Notes: generated from the sequence alone by a model not told the origin. Positions 47,275 through 59,181 are shown, numbered from the stretch's first letter. The stretch: DNA of 64,000 nucleotides from Antechinus flavipes (GCF_016432865.1 NC_067403.1:263748001-263812000); one strand, 5' to 3'. Translations and numbers: made by a program.

Positions 47275-47477
47275 CTAGCAAAGGAGCCCGAGCACGCGGC
47301 GAAAGAAGTTCCGGAACTCCGTATTGAAGACGGTGTAGATGACAGGGTTCAGGGCGCTGTTCACGTAACCCAACCACGTGACTACGCTGACCAGCCCCCG
47401 GGGCAGGGGGCAGGCGGGGCACAGCGCCCTGGTGACGTGGACCACAAAGAACGGCGTCCAGCACACGAGGAAGGCAC
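47275..47477 (-). CDS. DRD4: DRD4 exon 4
   Basis: [23 protein letters not shown]...[24 protein letters not shown]. Confidence 0.97.
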
Positions 47478-50400
47478 CTGGGGGTAAGAGGCTTCCGTGA
47501 GGCCGGTCCTCAACTCCGGGATGCACTTCTCCCGCCGCCCCTCCCCCCCAGTCCTGGGCTCCCCGCCCTCCCGCCGCCCCTCCCCCCTGTCCTGGGCTCC
47601 CCGCCCTCCCTCCACCCCACCCCCTTCCAAGTCCCGGCTCCCCGGCCTCCTCTCAGAACCCCAGCTGCCGAGGGGACACCCACCGACTACCACCGGCAGC
47701 ACCCTCATGGCCTTCCGCTCCCGGCCCGTGATCTTGGCTCGTTTTTTCGGGGGCCCGGCGGGGGGCAGCGCCTGGGGCCGGGGCCCGACTGGGTAAGACA
47801 CCGTCTGGATTGGGCCGCGGGCCGAGTGGCCCTCCCGGTCGGGGCCCTCCGCGTCCGGGTCCTCCGGGTTGCGGCCGCCCCCGTCCGAGCCCTCCGAGTC
47901 GGGCCCCGGAAAGCGCCGGCGAGGCCAGGGCCGGGGCGGCCGGCCCGGCCCGCGGGCGGCCCCCGGGCCCAGGCTCCGCCGCAGCTTGGCCCTGCGGGCC
48001 TCCTCCCAGGTGCGGAGGCGCCGGAACATGGCGCAGTAGAGGACCAGCATCAGCGGGCAGGGCAGGAAGAAGGAGCACACCGACGACCAGACGACGTAGT
48101 TCCGGCTCTCCAGCTGGCACACGGCCGGGTCCCGGTCCGGGGCGCCGTTGAGACCGAACAGCACCGGCGCGGCCACGGCGAAGGCCAGCCCCCACACGGC
48201 GCCGATGAGCAGCAGCTGCCGCCTCCCCAGCTGCCGCCGGCTGTAGTTCAGGGGCACGGAGACCGCGATGAACCTGCGGGGGGAGGCCGGGGAGCTGGGG
48301 GCTAGCCGGGAGGGGGCCCCTCCCGCGCAGTCGCCGGCTTCGAGGAGCCAAACTGGCGGCCCGAGCTGGGGCTCTGGGGGAAGGCAGCCCCTCGGCAGCG
48401 AGCCAGGGAGGCCGGGAGGGGGCTCGATTCTCCGCCTTTGCTAACTTGTGTGTCCGGGGTCAGCCTCGGGAGGCAGAGAGGCCAGCTGGCTGGGGGGCGG
48501 GGCTGGGGGAGGAGGCCCACCTGTCCACGCTGATGGCGCAGAGGTGGAAGATGGAGGCTGTGCAGAGCATCACGTCCATAGTCATCAGAGCATCACACAG
48601 AGCCGGGTTCAGAGTCCATACGCCTCCCTGGTACTGGGACGGATGGACAGAGCTCTGAGGTCCCGGCGTCAACCACTCAGACATTCACAGTGTGTGTGGG
48701 GGGAGAGAGACAGACAGAGACACAGAGAGAGACAAAGACAGAGACACACAGACAGGCAGAGACACAGACACAAAGAGACAGAGAAAGAGTCAGAAACAGA
48801 GAGAGAGACAGGGAGACAGAGACACTGAGAAACAGGGAGAGAAAGAACACTCACGGCACACACCCACTCTCATTTGGGACAGAGAGAAGCTGGGAGGCTA
48901 CACCCCAATGCCCTCAGATTTCTCCCTCTGCAGAGCACAAACGGGGCACACCAGGGACCCAGACAGGGGTGTAGATTTGGCCAAAATAGCTGTGCTTATT
49001 CCAGTCTGGTCGGGAGAAGAAAAGCATGGTCTGCCCTGGGAGCCCTCCTTCTGCTTCTGAACTCTGGCTGAGATCTTGGCCATGTCCCCCACCCACTGTT
49101 TCCTGGGCAGTGGACGAGTGGGGATGCGGGAAAGGCTGCTCTCCCTTCCTTTCCACGTTGACATCTGGACCTCACTGCCATTGGAGGGGCCATTCAGTGG
49201 CTTTGTGTAGTAGGATGGCCCTTAGGGTTGGATCAAAAGACCTGGTGCTGACCAGGCCCCTGTGCCAAGTGGGGGTAGAATCAATCTTTGTAAGTACTCC
49301 TCTCTCCCTGGGCCTTGGTTGTCCAGATGCTTTGGGATCTCCTGCACCCTAGTCTCCAATTCCCTGGAGCCCTCTGAACTAAAAGATCTCTAAGGTCCCT
49401 TACAACTCTCAGTCTCAAAGCCTCCATTACTTCCAGCTCTAGAGATCGCTGACAAAGAATCCAAGTGCCTGGATCGCTTCACTGTAAATCTTGGGAGCCT
49501 CAACCAGGCCCTACCAGACACCCTCCAAAGGAGATCTCGGCCCCTCCTCCTCTGTCCTCTCCACTGAGATTAAAGGCTTAGTGGGCAGCAGAGACGTCAG
49601 AGTTCAGAATGACCCCTCCCTCCCTGGATTAGCTTGTCCTCATCCCCTACCCTTCCCTCAGTCTGTCCTTCACACCACCTGTGAGGACATTCACAAAGAC
49701 CCCAAAAGTAACAAGAAAGTTTGGTCTCCCAGGACCCCCTCCCTCATACACCCCGCCCCCTTCCTTCCAAAGTAGGAGGAGCACCCCATACTGAGTGATC
49801 CCAACGTTTGAGGTCGGCCATGAGTCCCCGGTCAGAGTGCAGCAATTCCCCCTCCCAACCCCCTCCATGGGATGATAATGCTGGAAGAGCAGGAAGTGGC
49901 CAGGTGCTGCCTCAGCCCCGCAGGTCCCATGACGCAAGTCTGACGACCTCAGACAAGAACCACCTTGTCTTCATCCCTGGCTGTGCTCCTGCTGCGCCTC
50001 GGGCCCCTCAGAGGTGACCCAGTTTATCCTCCGCCCCCAGATGGATGTTTTATAAGTTGGTTTCTGCTTTATAGAGAGGGCCTGTCTTTACCTGGACAGT
50101 TGCATTAGGAACCTTGTGCTGCTCACTCCTTAGGGCAGAACCAAGGGAAGAAATACTAGTGATGCAAGGAGTGGGGGCTGGCTGAAATCCTTTGACTGAC
50201 TCTCCCATTCTTTGGTGTCTGAGCTTAAGAAGAGGGGGTCAAAGGGATCTAGATTCTTCACACACTTCACTGAACAGATTCTTATTAAAAGGCACAGAGT
50301 TAGAAAATCTGGAAACAAGAGGGAGATTGGGCCGGGCATCTCAGGCACTAGCTGCAAGGCTGCGCCCCACGCAGTCCGTGTCACTCAGAAGGAGGTATTC

Positions 50401-52058
50401 ACCAGAGCGCCCCCGGAGTCTGTCCAGGAGGCTGGGCTGTTCCACATTTTTACAGTGAACTTGGATAAAGACTTGGATGGCTTGCTTATCCAACGTGCAC
50501 ATGACTAAGTCAGGAAGGCCAACTCACCAGATAATGTGGGCTAGCCAGTCAGGATCCCAAAACAGCTTAATGGGCTAGGAGTGGGTAGGTGACCAAGGAT
50601 GAGGTCCCTTGGGCCTTTGGGTTCAATTAGTCCCAGAAACAGCTGGGACAAGGAGAAAACTGCTTCCCCTAAACACCCTCTGAGAGATCTTCAACATTGC
50701 TCTTTGGGCAGAGCAAGACAGGTTGCTCAGACTTGAACTGACAGCAGATTAGCATCTCCTTCTTTCCTTTCTCCTCTGTGTTTCTCTTTCTCTCTCTTCC
50801 TCTCCTTTTGTCTGTGTCTGTGTTTCTCTCTCTTCTTCTTTCTCTCCTGCATCACCTTCTCTCCTTTATTCTTTTCCCCAGCCTTCCTCTCCCTGCACTT
50901 CTCATCCCTCTTTGGNNNNNNNNNNNNNNNNNNNNNNNNNNNNNNNNNNNNNNNNNNNNNNNNNNNNNNNNNNNNNNNNNNNNNNNNNNNNNNNNNNNNN
51001 NNNNNNNNNNNNNNNNNNNNNNNNNNNNNNNNNNNNNNNNNNNNNNNNNTCCCTCCATCTCTCCTCTGTTTCTCCCGACATCTCTGTGTCTCTCCATTTC
51101 TCTCTTCCCTCTATTACTCTCTCTCTTCCCTTCCCTTCCTCTCTCTTCTTTCTTCTCCTTTTCTTTCCCTCCACCCCTCTTTCCTCCGTTTCTCTGTGCA
51201 TCCCTCTCTTTTCTCTCTCTCCCAGTTGCCTTTCTCAGTCTATTGCTATCTTGTCATCTTCATCTCCCTCCTCGATCTCAGGAAACCAGGACTGGTATTG
51301 GAGTCTGGAGGACTATGGGAAGGTTGAGGACAATGGTCAGAGGGCATGACCGTGTCAGGTTCAGTGTTTCAAGAGATGAGATGTGTATGAAAGGAATTAG
51401 CAAAGGAGGGCTAGGGAAAGTATGGGACAGACATGAAAGGGGTAGCAGGGGACGGGATTCAAAGAATCAGCGACAGGGACCGTGCAACATGAAGTAGACT
51501 AGACTAGGGGTTTATACCGGGATATGGGGGAGGGGGCAGGCAGGATCCTGGGCTGGACAATTGGAGTGGAAGGTCCAAGAATAGACAGTAAAAGGAATTG
51601 GGGGGGAGGGGGAAGAGTGATGTCCTTTATCCAAAGGAGGGGGAAGATCCCGAGTTAGAAGCGGGAGCTGGGGGGGGGGGGAGTCCAATGGAGGAGAGAG
51701 GGACTGCAAAAGGGATGGGAGTGGCTTGGGTCTAGGAGGCAGGTTGGACGGGCAGACCGGGCCAGGGGGCTTCCTGGATCCGGGTTCACCTCACCTCGGA
51801 GTAGACGAAGAGCGGGAGAACTAGTAGCGCCAGCAGCAGGTCGGCCACGGCCAGGCTCACTATGAAGAAGTTGGTGGGGGTCTGCAGGGCCCGTTCCGCC
51901 GCCACGCTCACACACACGAGCGCATTGCCAGCCAGTACGGTGACCATGAGCAGGATGCCCCCGACCAGAGCGCCCACATGCGGCTCGAGGGTCCCCAGGC
52001 CCCCTCTGCCGCTGCCCGCGAGCTCGCTGGCGTTCGAGAAACTGCGGTTCCCCGGCAT
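47275..52058 (-). CDS. DRD4: Dopamine receptor D4, whole coding span
   Basis: Join (minus) 52058-51795, 48633-48521, 48273-47684, 47477-47275 = 1170 nt, 389 aa. 7TM motifs [44 protein letters not shown]; four-exon layout as in DRD4. Confidence 0.98.
47684..48273 (-). CDS. DRD4: DRD4 exon 3
   Basis: [13 protein letters not shown]...[17 protein letters not shown]; 590 nt. Confidence 0.97.
48521..48633 (-). CDS. DRD4: DRD4 exon 2
   Basis: [37 protein letters not shown](R); 113 nt. Confidence 0.97.
48680..48845. repeat. (GA/GACA)n low-complexity tract in DRD4 intron 1
   Basis: Direct inspection. Confidence 0.85.
50750..51235. repeat. CT-rich low-complexity tract spanning a gap
   Basis: Direct inspection. 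Confidence 0.8.
50916..51049. other. Assembly gap (134 N)
   Basis: N run. Confidence 1.
51795..52058 (-). CDS. DRD4: DRD4 exon 1
   Basis: [11 protein letters not shown]...[34 protein letters not shown]; |GTGAGG. Confidence 0.95.
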
Positions 52059-52076
52059 CGCCGAGGACGGATCCCC

Positions 52077-52097
52077 TTCAGGACCGTGGACAGCGCC
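52077..52097 (+). promoter_or_regulatory. RE1/NRSE (REST site) in DRD4 5' UTR
   Basis: TTCAGGACCGTGGACAGCGCC versus consensus TTCAGCACCNNGGACAGCGCC: one mismatch. Confidence 0.75.
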
Positions 52098-52669
52098 GCG
52101 CCCCGCCAAACGGAGACGGGGCGCCGCGCCGCATTCCCGGAGACTCAGCTCCGACTGAGGAGCCCCGGGAACGGACAAAGAGGGCCCAGGGGCTGAAGAG
52201 CGGGGGCCGGGCGCCCTAACCTCTGGTCCTCCCCCCGCCCCCAGCCTATCTCCGGTCCTGGCTGCTGAGCTCAACTCCGGCTTTCAGCACGCGGTAAGTT
52301 CTCTGGCTCCACCCCGGCCTCGCCCCTTCTCGGTCCCGCCCTCTCCGGGCTCTGAAGCGAGCCCCCCCAACACAAACACACGCAGGCACGCACGCACACG
52401 CGCGCGCGCGCCCCTCCCCTCTTTGCAGAGATGGCCGAAGTGAGGGGACCCAGAAGCACTGGGTTACCACCAGCGTCCCTCGCCTTCCAATACAATCAAG
52501 ACTTGGAAAGGGTGGGATAGTCTGGGAATCCGGGATGGACATTGGTCTGGAAGCAGGGGCAATACCGCGTGACTTCGGAGACAGTTCGGGAAGAGCTCAT
52601 TGGTCAAGGTACCGGGAGTCCAGGGTGCTGTCAGTCAGAGAACCTACAAATGTTCTATCATTTCAGTCC

Positions 52670-54369: not shown

Positions 54370-54730
54370 GGTCTCTGTCTCTCCCAATGTCTCTGGGTCC
54401 CTGTCTCTCTGGATCCCAGTCCCTCCCAGTGTCTCTAGGTCTCGGTCTCTCCCTGTGTCTCTGGGTCTCCGTCTCTCCCAATGTCTCTGGATCTCTGTCT
54501 CTCCCAGTATCTCTGGATCTCTCTCTCTCTCTCTCCCAGTATCTCTGAGTCTCTGAATCTCCCTGTGTCTCTGTCTCTCCCAATGTTTATGGGTCCCTGT
54601 CTCTCCCAGCGTCTCTGGGTCTCTGAATCTCCCAATGTCTCTGAGTCTCTGAATCTCCCCGTATCTCTGTCTCTCCCTGTCTCACTACCCCTCTGAGAAC
54701 TGTCTTCCTCTCCCTGTCTCTGTAACTCTC
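54370..54730. repeat. Degenerate CT-rich tandem repeat
   Basis: tctctgggtccctgtctctccc variants. Confidence 0.75.
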
Positions 54731-54974
54731 CCATAGGGGTCTCCTTGTCCGAGCCTTCCTTCTCTTTCCTTTTCTTTCAGTCTCTGTCTCCTTACCGCCC
54801 TAGCTCAGGCTTCCAGCTTCGGCCTCTATGATTCTGTCTGTCTCGGTCTCGGAGCGTCCGTCTTGCCCGCTTCTCGTCTCTAGCTCCTCCTTCCCCATGC
54901 CCGTTCCCGCCCCTTAGAAAGTCTCCTGCCCTGGATCTCGGATCTCGGGCGCCAGAGCGCGCTGCCCAGCTCCG

Positions 54975-56758
54975 GCCCCTGAGCCCGCGCTCCCTCCTTC
55001 TCAGGCTCCTGAGCCCGCGCTCCTTCCTTCTCAGGCTCCCTGCCTCTGCGCTCCCTCCTTCTCAGGCTCCTGAGCCCCCGCTCCCTCCTCCTCAGGCTCC
55101 CTGCCTCTGCGCTCCCTCCTTCTCAGGCTCCTGAGCCCCCGCTCCCTCCTTCTCAGACCCCTGAGCCCGCGTTCCCTCCTTCTCAGACCCCTGAGCCCGC
55201 GCTCCCTTCTTCTCAGGCTCCTGAGCCTCCGTCCCTCCTCAGGCTCCTGCCTCTGCGCTCCCTCCTTCTCAGGCTCCTGAGCCCCCGCTCCCTCCTCAGA
55301 CCCCTGAGCCCGCGCTCCCTCCTCAGGCTCCTGAGCCCCCGCTCCCTCCTCAGCCCCTGAGCCTCCGCTCCTCCTCAGGCCCCTGAGCCTCCGCTCCTCC
55401 TCAGGCTCCCTGCCTCTGCGCTCCCTCCTTCTCAGGCTCCTGAGCCCGCGCTCCCTCCTCAGGCTCCTGAGCCCCCGCTCCCTCCTTCTCAGGCTCTTGA
55501 GCCTCCGTCCCTCCTCAGCTCCTGCCTCTGCGCTCCCTCCTTCTCAGGCTCCTGAGCCCCCGCTCCCTCCTCAGGCTCCCTGCCTCTGCGCTCCCTCCTT
55601 CTCAGGCTCCTGAGCCCGCGCTCCCTCCTCAGCCCCTGAGCCTCCGCTCCCTCCTCAGGCCCCTGAGCCCGCGCTCCCTCCTTCTCAGATCCCTGAGCCC
55701 GCGCTCGCTCCTTCTCAGACCCCTGAGCCCGCGCTCCCTCCTCAGGCCCCTGAGCCTCCGCTCCCTCCTCAGATCCCTGAGCCCCCGCTCCCTCCTTCTC
55801 AGGCTCCTGAGCCCGCGCTCCCTCCTCAGGCTCCTGAGCCCCCGCTCCCTCCTTCTCAGGCTCCTGAGCCTCCGTCCCTCCTCAGGCTCCTGCCTCTGCG
55901 CTCCCTCCTTCTCAGGCTCCTGAGGCCCCGTTCCCTCCTTCTCATGCTCCCTGCCTCTGCGCTCCCTCCTTCTCAGGCTCCTGAGCCCGCGCTCCCTCCT
56001 CAGGCCCCTGAGCCTCCGCTCCCTCCTCAGGCCCCTGAGCCCGCGCTCCCTCCTTCTCAGATCCCTGAGCCCGCGCTCCCTCCTCAGCTCCTGCCTCTGC
56101 GCTCCTCCTTCTCAGACCCCTGAGCCCGCGCTCCCTCCTTCTCAGATCCCTGAGCCCGCGCTCCCTCCTTCTCAGACCCCTGAGCCCGCGCTCCCTCCTT
56201 CTCAGACCCCTGAGCCCCGCCTCTCTCCTTCTCAGACCCCTGAGCCCGCGCTCCCTCCTTCTCAGGCTCCTGAGCCCCCGTTCCCTCCTTCTCATGCTCC
56301 CTGCCTCTGCGCTCCCTCCTTCTCAGGCTCCTGAGCCCGCGCTCCCTCCTCAGGCCCCTGAGCCTCCGCTCCCTCCTCAAGCCCCTGAGCCCGCGCTCCC
56401 TCCTTCTCAGACCCCTGAGCCCGCGCTCCCTCGTCAGGCCCCTGAGCCTCCGCTCCCTCCTCAGACCCCTGAGCCAGCGCTCCCTCCTTCTCAGACCCCT
56501 GAGCCCCGCCTCTCTCCTTCTCAGATCCCTGAGCCCGCGCTCGCTCCTTCTCAAACCCCTGAGCCCCGCCTCTCTCCTTCTCAGATCCCTGAGCCCGCGC
56601 TCGCTCCTTCTCAGACCCCTGAGCCCGCGCTCCCTCCTCAGGCCCCTGAGCCTCCGCTCCCTCCTCAGACCCCTGAGCCCGCGCTCCCTCCTTCTCAGAC
56701 CCCTGAGCCCCGCCTCTCTCCTTCTCAGACCCCTGAGCCCGCGCTCCCTCCTTCTCAG
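54975..56758. repeat. Large minisatellite, 27-31 bp units (ctcaggctcctgagcccgcgctccctcctt), about 60 copies
   Basis: Direct inspection; copy number estimated from length. Confidence 0.97.
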
Positions 56759-56828
56759 GAGCTCCGAGAGCTCAGCCGTCGGACGTTTCGAATATCCCGT
56801 GTCTCCCGGCGCACAACCCTCAGTCCCC

Positions 56829-56908
56829 ATGGCCAAAGGAGTCGGGGCCCTCGTGATCCTCTTTGCCTTCTTGATCCAAGGATCTTCTTCGCTCCCGGCT
56901 CCTCAGAG
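56829..56908 (+). CDS. SCT: SCT signal-peptide exon
   Basis: [26 protein letters not shown](R): hydrophobic core plus small-residue cleavage region; AG|GTGAAT donor, phase 2. Confidence 0.88.
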
Positions 56909-59181
56909 GTGAATCCTTCCCCTGCATCTTCCCACCCCGGCTCCCCTAGCTGGGTGGCTGGGGATCGGCGGACGCCAACCAGACCTGGGCTCGGGGCTCC
57001 GAGAGAGGGCGGGACTGGGCAGAGGGAGGCCACCCTCCCCTGCTCTTTCCGGGGTGCGTCCTGACCGGAGGATGCTTCGGGTCCGACCAGGGACGGGGAC
57101 ACGGTTAGCAACCGACGCGCTTCCCTCAGACCTCCTGCCGACTTGGCGGGCCCCAGCCGAAGCTCTCGGGTGGAACGTCTGCGGATGGGGATGGTTGGGG
57201 CACTCCTTCTCCCACACCTCCCTGGCTCGGCCTCCTCCCCCCGCCCCTCACAGCCTGTCTCCCGATAGGACTCAGCGCCACATGGACGGCGCCTTCACCA
57301 GCGAGCTGAGTCGCCTGAGGGAGAGCGCTTTCGTCCAGAGCCTGGTCCGCGCGCTGGTCGGCCTGGGGCCCAGGTGAGCGCTTCCCCGGGATGTTGGGGG
57401 AGGGGGAGGGAATCAGAGAACTGGAAGAGGGGCGCGGGGCCGAGCCGGGCCTGACGCAGCTGCCGCCACGCGCCCGCTCCGGCCCCCAGCCCGCTCCGCT
57501 GCCTCCCCAGGACCCAGAGACACTCAGACGGCGCCTTCACCAGCGAGCTCAGTAAAATAAGAGGAAACGCCCAGGTGCACCGCCTTATTCAGCAGCTGGT
57601 GGGTAAGCGCAGGTGAGAGCCGTGAGCGCGTCCGCTCCCACATGCCTTCCCCCAGACAAGTGGCCCCGCCCCACAGACACCCCGAGGTTCAGCGCCCCCC
57701 ATCCCTCAACCCCCCATCCCTACAAGCGCACACTCTCCCTCTAATCACTTCCAGCTATCTGCAGGTCTGTAACACTCCCTTTTCTCTTTGTGGCCGGGAA
57801 GATCAGTCAGAGAGCCGGAGGAGGTGACTGGAAGGAGCGGGGAAAATGGGCCCCTCGCCTCGGCCCAGGACAATTCGCCCTGCCTGAAGTGGCTTCGAAT
57901 GTGCCTCCCACAGAACGGGTAACTGCTCCCCTTTCCTGGAGCGCAAATGGGGCTGCGCGATCCCTCCCCTTTCCTCCCCCGGGCCATCTTGGGAGCGCGG
58001 GCGGTCTGCAGGGCTCCCTGTCCTTTCCGGGGTTTCCGGGCTGGGCCTCTGTCTCCAGGACCAGTGTTCAAGGCCCTCTTGTGACTTCTCAGTGCAGAAC
58101 TTGGAGGGAGATCCCTCGGAAGCAACTGTCTCTGGCAAGTCGCTCCGTGGCCAGAAGCTGAGGCTGAAGGGAAAGGAGCCTCTCCCGGGGAGGGCGCCCA
58201 AAGGCAAAGCGCTCGCTGTCTGACTCAGTAATAAAGGAGCATCTGATACAGAGTCCGGCTCGTGTGATGGAGAGGAGGGGGTTGCGGGGAAGGCGGGGGT
58301 TGGGGGGAGGAGCGTTAGAAACAGGCGGCTCCAGAAGCAGAACGGGGCTGGGAAGCGCAAATCGTTACACTCCCGAGTCCGCAGTCAGACGCCTCCCGAT
58401 CGGTCCTAGCGGAGCCCTCCCCTCACCGAGGGGTCCCTGGGCCGGGGAGGTCGGCTGAAGGGGCGGGGCTGTTCTGGCGGAGGCGCCTCGGGAGGCTCCT
58501 TCGGCCCTGAAACTTGCATCACCCTTGAGGGCCGTCCCCAAGGGCAAGGGCGGCCCTGTGGAGGAAGGAGACTCAGGAAGGGCGCAAGGAAACCAGCGGA
58601 GCTCGGACGTGCTTGAGAAAACTTCCCCTCTCCGGAGGTCATCAAACCAGAGCCCAGACCTGGGGGGGGGGGCTTCCTTGCCGGCCAGGCTAGAGACCCC
58701 AAGTTCTTTTTGCCGTTAGAATTCTGGATTGCCAAGGGATTGGGGGGCTGCTTCCCAAGGGTAGAGCTGGCCAGCCCCAGCTTCCTCCTGCACGGCCCCT
58801 CACTGATCCTGAACCACATCAAAGGTGCCCTAATCCCTTCCTTGCCCGAAACCCCTCCTCTTCCCCGAGGGTTCACTCCCTAGGAGACAACCCGACCCTT
58901 CCCTTTCTCCCTGAAAGCAGCTGCAGCCGCTGTGGATGCTTAGGCTCCCAAGGCTCTACCTCTCGCTGGCCCGGACCGGGGCTTTCTCCCCTTGTCAGTC
59001 CCCTCTCCCCTTGCCAGTCCCTTCTCCCCTTGCCAGTCCCCTCTCCCCTTGCCAGTCCCTTCTCCCCAGACTGCCCAGTCTTTTCTGGGAGATCAGCCCA
59101 CAGAGGCAGAGCTTTGGAAGCAGAGCTGGAAGGGCTCTCAAGAAGCCCAGGTCCCTCTCTTCTCCTGCTCCTGCTTCCTGA
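56829..59181 (+). CDS. SCT: Secretin precursor with two secretin-family peptides, proposed coding span
   Basis: Proposed join 56829-56908, 57269-57373, 57511-57612, 57811(or 57802)-57918, 59070-59181; all introns phase 2; about 168 aa. Divergent from DRD4, as SCT is in human. The last two exons are less secure. Confidence 0.8.
57269..57373 (+). CDS. SCT: SCT peptide exon A (secretin-like peptide)
   Basis: gatag|; (R)[34 protein letters not shown](R); AG|GTGAGC; 105 nt. Confidence 0.9.
57511..57612 (+). CDS. SCT: SCT peptide exon B (27-aa amidated secretin)
   Basis: ccccag|; (R)[33 protein letters not shown]; AG|GTGAGA; 102 nt. Confidence 0.95.
57811..57918 (+). CDS. SCT: SCT C-terminal propeptide exon (predicted)
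   Basis: [35 protein letters not shown] resembles the rodent EN..LA...D.LCLLW segment as recalled; GG|GTAACT donor, phase 2; acceptor ambiguous (57802 or 57811). Confidence 0.6.
58986..59069. repeat. 19 bp tandem repeat x4 plus partial copy (ctccccttgccagtcccct)
   Basis: AG dinucleotides at 58997, 59016, 59035, 59054. Confidence 0.9.
59070..59181 (+). CDS. SCT: SCT terminal exon (tentative)
   Basis: Long pyrimidine tract plus CAG; phase-2 frame [36 protein letters not shown]. An alternative exon at 59327-59360 cannot be excluded. Confidence 0.4.

Follow-up and report, generated by a model that had tools for sequence, protein, structure and literature searches.

Endocrinology was founded on secretin, and to our knowledge its mammalian gene, SCT, has been described as a one-hormone gene. 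In a stretch of 64,000 nucleotides of the Antechinus flavipes genome (GCF_016432865.1, NC_067403.1:263748001-263812000; referred to here, at its full length, as the window) SCT carries two consecutive peptide exons, A and B. By its exon structure and product the gene is the SCT of a dasyurid marsupial, and its single prepropeptide is predicted to hold two class-B1-type hormones in tandem. We consider it highly probable that this gene preserves an ancestral two-peptide SCT, in which peptide A is the orthologue of the secretin-like peptide (SCT-LP) of sauropsids, peptide B is secretin, and the placental stem lost exon A by deletion. A PLoS Biology paper of December 2025 still takes it that mammals have presumably lost the second peptide derived from secretin (PMC12714231).

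Two peptide exons in the secretin gene

SCT lies on the + strand of the window and consists of five coding exons, as established by direct reading of the sequence and translation. The parts that concern the two peptides are listed here by window position.

56829..56908, + strand: coding part of SCT exon 1 (80 nt), with the signal peptide and the start of the propeptide, ending in the AG of a split Arg codon
57269..57373, + strand: exon A (105 nt, phase 2 at both ends), with R-T-Q-R, a secretin-like peptide, GLGP and the AG of the next Arg codon
57279..57359, + strand: core of peptide A, residues 1-27, by translation of exon A
57374..57510, + strand: intron A-B (137 nt, GT...AG)
57511..57612, + strand: exon B (102 nt, phase 2 at both ends), with R-T-Q-R, secretin and the G-K-R amidation/cleavage signal

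The ATG at 56829 starts a hydrophobic signal sequence, and the donor of exon 1 is the GT at 56909 (GTGAAT). Exon A is bordered by a ...cccgatAG acceptor and a GTgagc donor, and exon B by a ...ctccccAG acceptor and a GTgaga donor. All introns of the gene are phase 2, and exons A and B are free of stops. As the split codon (AG followed by G) specifies Arg, exons A and B each open with R-T-Q-R-H. Direct reading and translation thus bear out what a first-pass annotation of the same DNA had proposed, namely two adjacent AG/GT-bounded exons of 105 and 102 nt, phase 2-2, following the signal exon, both beginning with R-T-Q-R and without stops. The same annotation had put the identity of peptide B at 19/27 with chicken secretin and 17/27 with human secretin; our counts agree, the former on galliform secretin and the latter on human-type placental secretin (identical in Elephantulus).

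The spliced product of the window is exactly identical to the RefSeq protein XP_051819870.1 (P0066 in our set), a protein of 180 amino acids named "secretin isoform X2 [Antechinus flavipes]". Membership of SCT is indicated by a secretin sequence with RxxR before it and G-K-R after it, on an exon of 102 nt in phase 2, as in the dugong. Peptide B scores 27.5 bits with the Pfam family Hormone_2 (PF00123), above the cut-off of 21.2, and the whole precursor carries PF00123 in precomputed annotation. The N-terminus of peptide A reads H-x-D-G-x-F-T-S-E-L, and the peptide is identical to B at 16/27 positions. When a profile of A and B together was compared with 1.84 billion representative proteins, 55 matches were obtained, headed by secretin precursors that match in two stretches with E-values of 1e-39 to 1e-18. 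Measured in this way, the resemblance of A and B to secretin precursors is far beyond chance.

Precursors with several peptides of the Hormone_2 type, on their own exons and cut at basic sites, are likewise known for VIP/PHM, PACAP/PRP and proglucagon (GLP-1/GLP-2), and VIP-type precursors appear as weaker two-stretch matches in the same profile search. All of these precursors differ from SCT in locus and sequence; those of VIP and PACAP share with it that the canonical hormone comes second. PHM and PRP are far more diverged from their partners than peptide A is from peptide B.

The likeness between the two exons also touches gene prediction: in Sarcophilus, an Ensembl-derived model (P0011, UniProt A0A7N4PA42) fuses 5' sequence of exon A to 3' sequence of exon B and then enters the intron, an evident mis-prediction because exons A and B resemble each other.

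Conservation and distribution of exon A

Nucleotides and codons were compared among three genomes, those of Antechinus (the window), Sarcophilus and Dromiciops. Between Antechinus and Dromiciops, exon A is 92% identical, compared to 64-66% for the introns that flank it (64% for intron A-B), a contrast with a Fisher p of 3.5e-9. Identity is 89% for exon B and 73-75% for exons 4-5. Within exon A the same pair of species differs by 5 synonymous changes over 26.7 sites and 3 non-synonymous changes over 75.3 sites, a deficit of the latter with a binomial p of 0.033. The corresponding Nei-Gojobori ratio of non-synonymous to synonymous divergence (omega) is 0.19 for exon A and 0.14 for residues 1-27, and about 0.4-0.5 for exon B. 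The AG/GT splice sites of SCT are kept in all three species.

Protein variability was assessed over seven marsupials, one didelphid among them. Five of the 27 positions of peptide A vary, versus nine of 27 in secretin (B), 57% in the signal/propeptide part and approximately 80% in the C-terminal exons 4-5, so that no other part of the precursor varies as little among these species as peptide A. Exon A is, according to both the nucleotide and the protein comparison, under purifying selection.

These data bear directly on the possibility that the gene models include exon A only through homology-based prediction, the exon being either a pseudo-exon (in decay or never in use) or a duplicate made in assembly. 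Such a reading could draw on a search of assembled public runs for the spliced A-B segment, in which no match was found, but it is hard to reconcile with an open frame and AG/GT borders kept in three genomes, with an exon found undamaged in the independent assemblies of 10 marsupial species, or with the high identity relative to the introns and an omega of about 0.15-0.2. Peptides A and B differ at 11/27 residues, hence exon A is no assembly copy, and we regard this explanation as scarcely credible. The first-pass annotation had named a disabled exon A in related marsupials, with a ratio of non-synonymous to synonymous change near 1, as evidence that would speak against a functional second peptide; instead, the exon is intact in every marsupial sampled and the ratio is low. 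It had also judged an assembly duplication unlikely, and we agree, given the differences between A and B and the conservation of the exon across species. A chance open reading frame was considered together with assembly duplication, and both are ruled out by the cross-species conservation.

Two-peptide 'secretin' models are found in ten marsupials (koala, Gracilinanus, Petaurus, wombat, Trichosurus, Dromiciops, Antechinus, Sarcophilus, tammar and Sminthopsis), in the platypus, and in turtles, crocodilians and birds; the marsupial records are automatic 'secretin' gene models. For a comparison of layout, the peptides were extracted from 37 species. The non-placental precursors consist of a signal sequence, RxxR, peptide A starting at residue 31 or 34, a V/M-G-L-x-x-R tail, x-Q-R and peptide B. 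In all non-placental amniotes sampled, peptide B begins exactly 35 residues past A and ends in Gly followed by basic residues, and RxxR precedes both A and B in every two-peptide lineage. In the avian precursor, as in the marsupial one, the order is signal - RxxR - A - RxxR - B - G-(K/R)-(K/R) on consecutive phase-2 exons.

Placental models, more than 100 in number, each contain one peptide. Placental SCT (human, pig, rodent) resembles the marsupial gene in its putative DRD4-like neighbour, its RxxR-His junction, its 102-nt exon with G-K-R and its phase-2 introns, and differs in having one peptide exon. In the dugong, intron 1 measures 138 nt and the single peptide exon 102 nt with the same phases; a tblastn search of the dugong locus, the one placental genome searched, gave no trace of an exon A relic. 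Given the layout shared by non-placental amniotes and the single placental exon, the parsimonious reading is that the two-peptide gene would be ancestral to amniotes and that a deletion on the placental stem removed exon A. On this distribution, loss of the second peptide is placental-specific and not mammal-wide. The suggestion in the first-pass annotation that marsupials retained an ancestral two-hormone precursor is therefore supported by the layout that marsupials share with the platypus, turtles, crocodilians and birds.

Two further observations concern the tandem arrangement in other lineages. The platypus model (P0049, UniProt A0A6I8NQ74; residues 44-115) contains a plausible peptide A (HVDGRFSSEFSKVQQRAYLQ...) and a degenerate peptide B (QADGTGADQFSKLREQAQAQ...), in which His1, Phe6 and Thr7 are lost and which is without G-K-R. 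In the agastric platypus, secretin proper may be decaying while an SCT-LP-like peptide survives. In the frog Engystomops pustulosus, a 111 kb contig holds two adjoining 'hypothetical' genes (P0012 and P0045), each encoding a tandem of secretin/VIP-like peptides that are nearly the same as one another (RRQADAIFTSEFSKLRNN... and RHSDAIFTSEYSKLLQRE...); the arrangement looks like a lineage-specific expansion.

Precursors with SCT-LP followed by secretin have been published for birds since 2012, and what appears new is SCT-LP in mammals. In the open-access literature we found no paper describing a second secretin peptide in marsupials or monotremes, though prior mention in subscription papers is possible; marsupials and monotremes are unmentioned in Cardoso 2010 and Tam 2011. 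The sequence itself is already public, as automatic RefSeq and UniProt models hold both peptides under the name 'secretin'. If our reading is correct, marsupials, and in some form the platypus, keep the SCT-LP exon, with marsupial peptide A more tightly constrained than secretin, and the loss of SCT-LP can be dated to the placental stem. Marsupials would then serve as a mammalian system in which to study the function of SCT-LP, and peptide repertoires of placentals should be used with caution as 'the mammalian' set.

Relation of peptide A to SCT-LP and predicted activity

On the grounds of its position, exon size (105 nt), phase and 3' signature rather than of its place in a tree, peptide A is very probably the orthologue of the SCT-LP of birds, turtles and crocodilians. 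Wang et al. reportedly described, in 2012, a chicken or avian precursor in which SCT-LP is followed by secretin. Antechinus and the tortoise Gopherus are alike in having peptide A on an exon of its own, between the signal and secretin exons, with a length of 105 nt and the same phase 2. The SCT-LP signature combines an aromatic residue 18 with a V-G-L-x-x-R tail that lacks a Gly-dibasic amidation site, and it is present in marsupial A as in the A peptides of birds and other sauropsids. Position 18 is F in marsupial A and Y in platypus and sauropsid A, and peptide B has Q18. Differences exist as well: position 2 is Met, Val or Thr in marsupial A versus Ala in sauropsid A, and marsupial A has the secretin-like residues Thr7 and Arg14, in contrast to Asn/His7 and Asn14 in sauropsid A.

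Several findings weigh against the reading of peptide A as a retained SCT-LP hormone. In a maximum-likelihood tree of the 27 aligned columns, therian A, therian B and placental secretin group together at 95/98, and a clade of all A peptides is absent. Peptide A alone scores 18.2 bits against PF00123 (E-value 0.0026), under the cut-off of 21.2. The selection estimate for exon A rests on three genomes and 8 substitutions, and the RefSeq models of the two-peptide gene are automatic predictions. The spliced A+B segment (P0066:27-95), compared with assembled public runs, gave no short-product candidate, and none of the marsupial two-peptide clusters has a Logan source. Finally, A could be less potent at the secretin receptor (SCTR) because its second residue is Met or Val and because it lacks amidation.

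With respect to the tree, a topology constrained to contain an all-A clade has a slightly higher likelihood than the free tree (p 0.67 in the approximately unbiased test), and the 27 residues place placental secretin with neither marsupial A nor marsupial B decisively. The codons shared by A and B provide a reason. In Antechinus, 9 of the 10 residues that A and B share within codons 1-11 use the same codon, versus 1 of 6 within codons 12-27 (p 0.008); the corresponding figures for Dromiciops are 6/9 and 0/5. Tortoise A and B lack such a contrast between the 5' and 3' parts, and the near-identity of codons 1-11 with exon B sets marsupial A apart from the avian precursor. Window positions 57279-57311 (A) and 57521-57553 (B) share an identical run of 23 nt. 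This pattern indicates that the 5' third of the marsupial exons A and B has been homogenised, i.e., has undergone gene conversion, and the tree leaves A and B unseparated because of this homogenisation. Conversion probably ran from B into A, because it is marsupial A that has the secretin-type residues Thr7 and Arg14 where sauropsid A does not. Marsupial exon A is thus likely to be of mosaic origin, and not the ancestral exon in unaltered form. As a separate observation, position 5 of B is Ala, as in A, in dasyurids and tammar, and Thr in other marsupials.

The grouping of both therian peptides, A and B, with placental secretin, away from sauropsid A, and the high proportion of identical codons at the 5' end might alternatively suggest that exon A arose by re-duplication of the secretin exon in mammals or marsupials, after loss of the ancestral SCT-LP exon. 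A new duplicate would, however, have to match the exon order, the length of 105 nt, the phases and the 35-residue spacing seen in the tortoise, crocodilians, birds and the platypus. Its 3' half would also have to show the aromatic residue 18 and V-G-L tail of sauropsid A while having only 1/6 codons in common with B. As the all-A clade is not rejected and partial gene conversion is a simpler source of the 5' similarity, we consider re-duplication very unlikely, and retention of the SCT-LP exon with partial conversion accounts better for both halves of exon A.

The N-terminus of placental secretin has been established from the purified hormone, and RxxR directly precedes its His1 (rapr, rtpr, ralr, rarr). 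With the same RxxR in front of A and B, a single convertase step should free both N-termini: following removal of the signal peptide, prohormone convertases would cleave after each R-x-x-R and release His1 of A and of B. Peptide B would then be trimmed at G-K-R to a Val27-amide, as in known secretins. For peptide A, cleavage at the RTQR that follows and carboxypeptidase trimming would probably define the C-terminus, giving a non-amidated peptide of approximately 31-34 residues; amidation of A is improbable because V-G-L-G-P-R-T-Q-R stands in place of G-K-R.

Substitution scans of secretin identify His1, Asp3, Phe6, Thr7 and Leu10 as the most sensitive positions, in addition to positions 8, 19, 22 and 23 (PMC8944975). 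Peptide A keeps secretin positions 1, 3, 4, 6, 7, 8, 9, 10 and 22 (H1, D3, G4, F6, T7, S8, E9, L10), and has Val19 and Val23 where marsupial secretin has Val19 and Ile23. In chicken, both peptides reportedly stimulate the SCTR of the same species (PMC12714231, citing Wang 2012). By analogy with chicken SCT-LP, and because the critical N-terminal residues are kept, peptide A would most likely be a second agonist of the secretin receptor, co-released with secretin. For chicken SCT-LP, expression, processing and nanomolar activity at the secretin receptor are reported, in contrast to marsupial peptide A, which is known here from the gene; it is from the gene that we infer a secreted second hormone in marsupials.

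Exon A might also be spliced and translated without yielding a hormone of consequence, either as a conserved spacer or propeptide that serves folding, sorting or processing of prosecretin, or as a redundant weak agonist. Consistent with this, peptide A is without G-K-R and its C-terminal cleavage is uncertain, it scores under the Pfam cut-off, placentals do entirely without it, and PMC12714231 still calls the in vivo role of bird SCT-LP unclear. A spacer, however, would not be expected to show conservation that is centred on hormone-like residues and tighter than that of secretin itself, in a precursor whose propeptide exons are so variable, nor an RxxR-His junction, freeing a class-B1 agonist N-terminus, that is kept in every lineage. 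Moreover, stimulation of SCTR by chicken SCT-LP is reported (PMC12714231). On balance, we consider such a spacer or redundant role unlikely, and a receptor-active peptide A the better explanation.

A wider reading would make peptide A a separate marsupial and monotreme hormone with its own receptor or target, and would have the middle region of placental secretin (SRLRESA) copied from exon A, through gene conversion or unequal recombination, before exon A was deleted. If so, part of a vanished sister hormone would live on in the earliest hormone to be discovered; we hold this to be rather improbable. Placental secretin is identical to A at 18/27 positions and to australidelphian B at 17/27, and its positions 11-17 (SRLRESA) equal those of marsupial A. 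More generally, this segment of placental secretin (SRLRESA/SRLRDSA) is closer to marsupial A and didelphid B than to australidelphian B. An origin of placental secretin as a clean chimera of A and B is not supported, as positions 2, 5, 18 (Q in the sloth), 21 and 24 are B-like, as are the G-K-R and the exon length of 102 nt, and didelphid B already reads SRLRD. Simple descent of placental secretin from B is sufficient, though a short tract converted from A is conceivable.

Remaining gene features, neighbourhood and repeats

The 3' part of SCT and an alternative splice form of exon B comprise the following features.

57490..57510, + strand: alternative 5' extension of exon B, with its acceptor AG at 57488-57489, 21 nt upstream; used by RefSeq isoforms X1 and X3
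57802..57918, + strand: exon 4 (117 nt), C-terminal propeptide (...CLPQN + GG); weakly conserved, fixed by the match to XP_051819870.1
58093..58231, + strand: coding part of exon 5 (AELGGRS...ARCLTQ), with stop TAA at 58229-58231; weakly conserved, fixed by the match to XP_051819870.1
58230..58235, + strand: AATAAA polyadenylation signal, overlapping the stop codon; kept in Sarcophilus and Dromiciops

The extension of exon B adds seven residues, SPLRCLP, after GLGP and retains the RTQR site; Sminthopsis secretin also has it, as SPPRCLP. All of the Antechinus RefSeq isoforms (3/3) contain both A and B. The C-terminus of isoform X3 is frameshifted, which suggests an alternative acceptor of the last exon approximately 5 nt downstream of 58093 (placed by eye).

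Upstream of SCT and head to head with it lies a gene for a seven-transmembrane (7TM) receptor of the rhodopsin type, DRD4-like, which spans 47.4-52.3 kb on the minus strand. Its exons were found at 47385-48440 (-) and 51789-52283 (-), matching Pfam 7tm_1 with E-values of 8e-15 and 4e-12. Sarcophilus SCT likewise has a 7TM gene of 503 residues upstream, head to head. The upstream gene is presumably DRD4, and we take the usual neighbourhood of SCT to be DRD4 upstream, head to head, and CDHR5 downstream. In the dugong a cadherin gene follows SCT; no cadherin open reading frame was seen in the 58.3-64 kb part of the window.

Two tandem arrays separate the DRD4-like gene from SCT. A minisatellite with a unit of 30 bp (consensus CTCAGGCCCCTGAGCCCGCGCTCCCTCCTT) and approximately 62 copies extends over window positions 54970-56759, where it occupies the expected SCT promoter or 5' untranslated region and ends approximately 70 nt before the start codon. 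At the same place Sarcophilus has 3.4 copies (L001 2828-2931) and Dromiciops none, and the array is therefore a recent expansion in the Antechinus lineage. An older array of 26-bp units (TCTCTGGGTCTCTGTCTCTCCCAGTG-like) is located at window 54371-54683, L001 2385-2558 and L002 1952-2704, and is found in Antechinus, Sarcophilus and Dromiciops alike.

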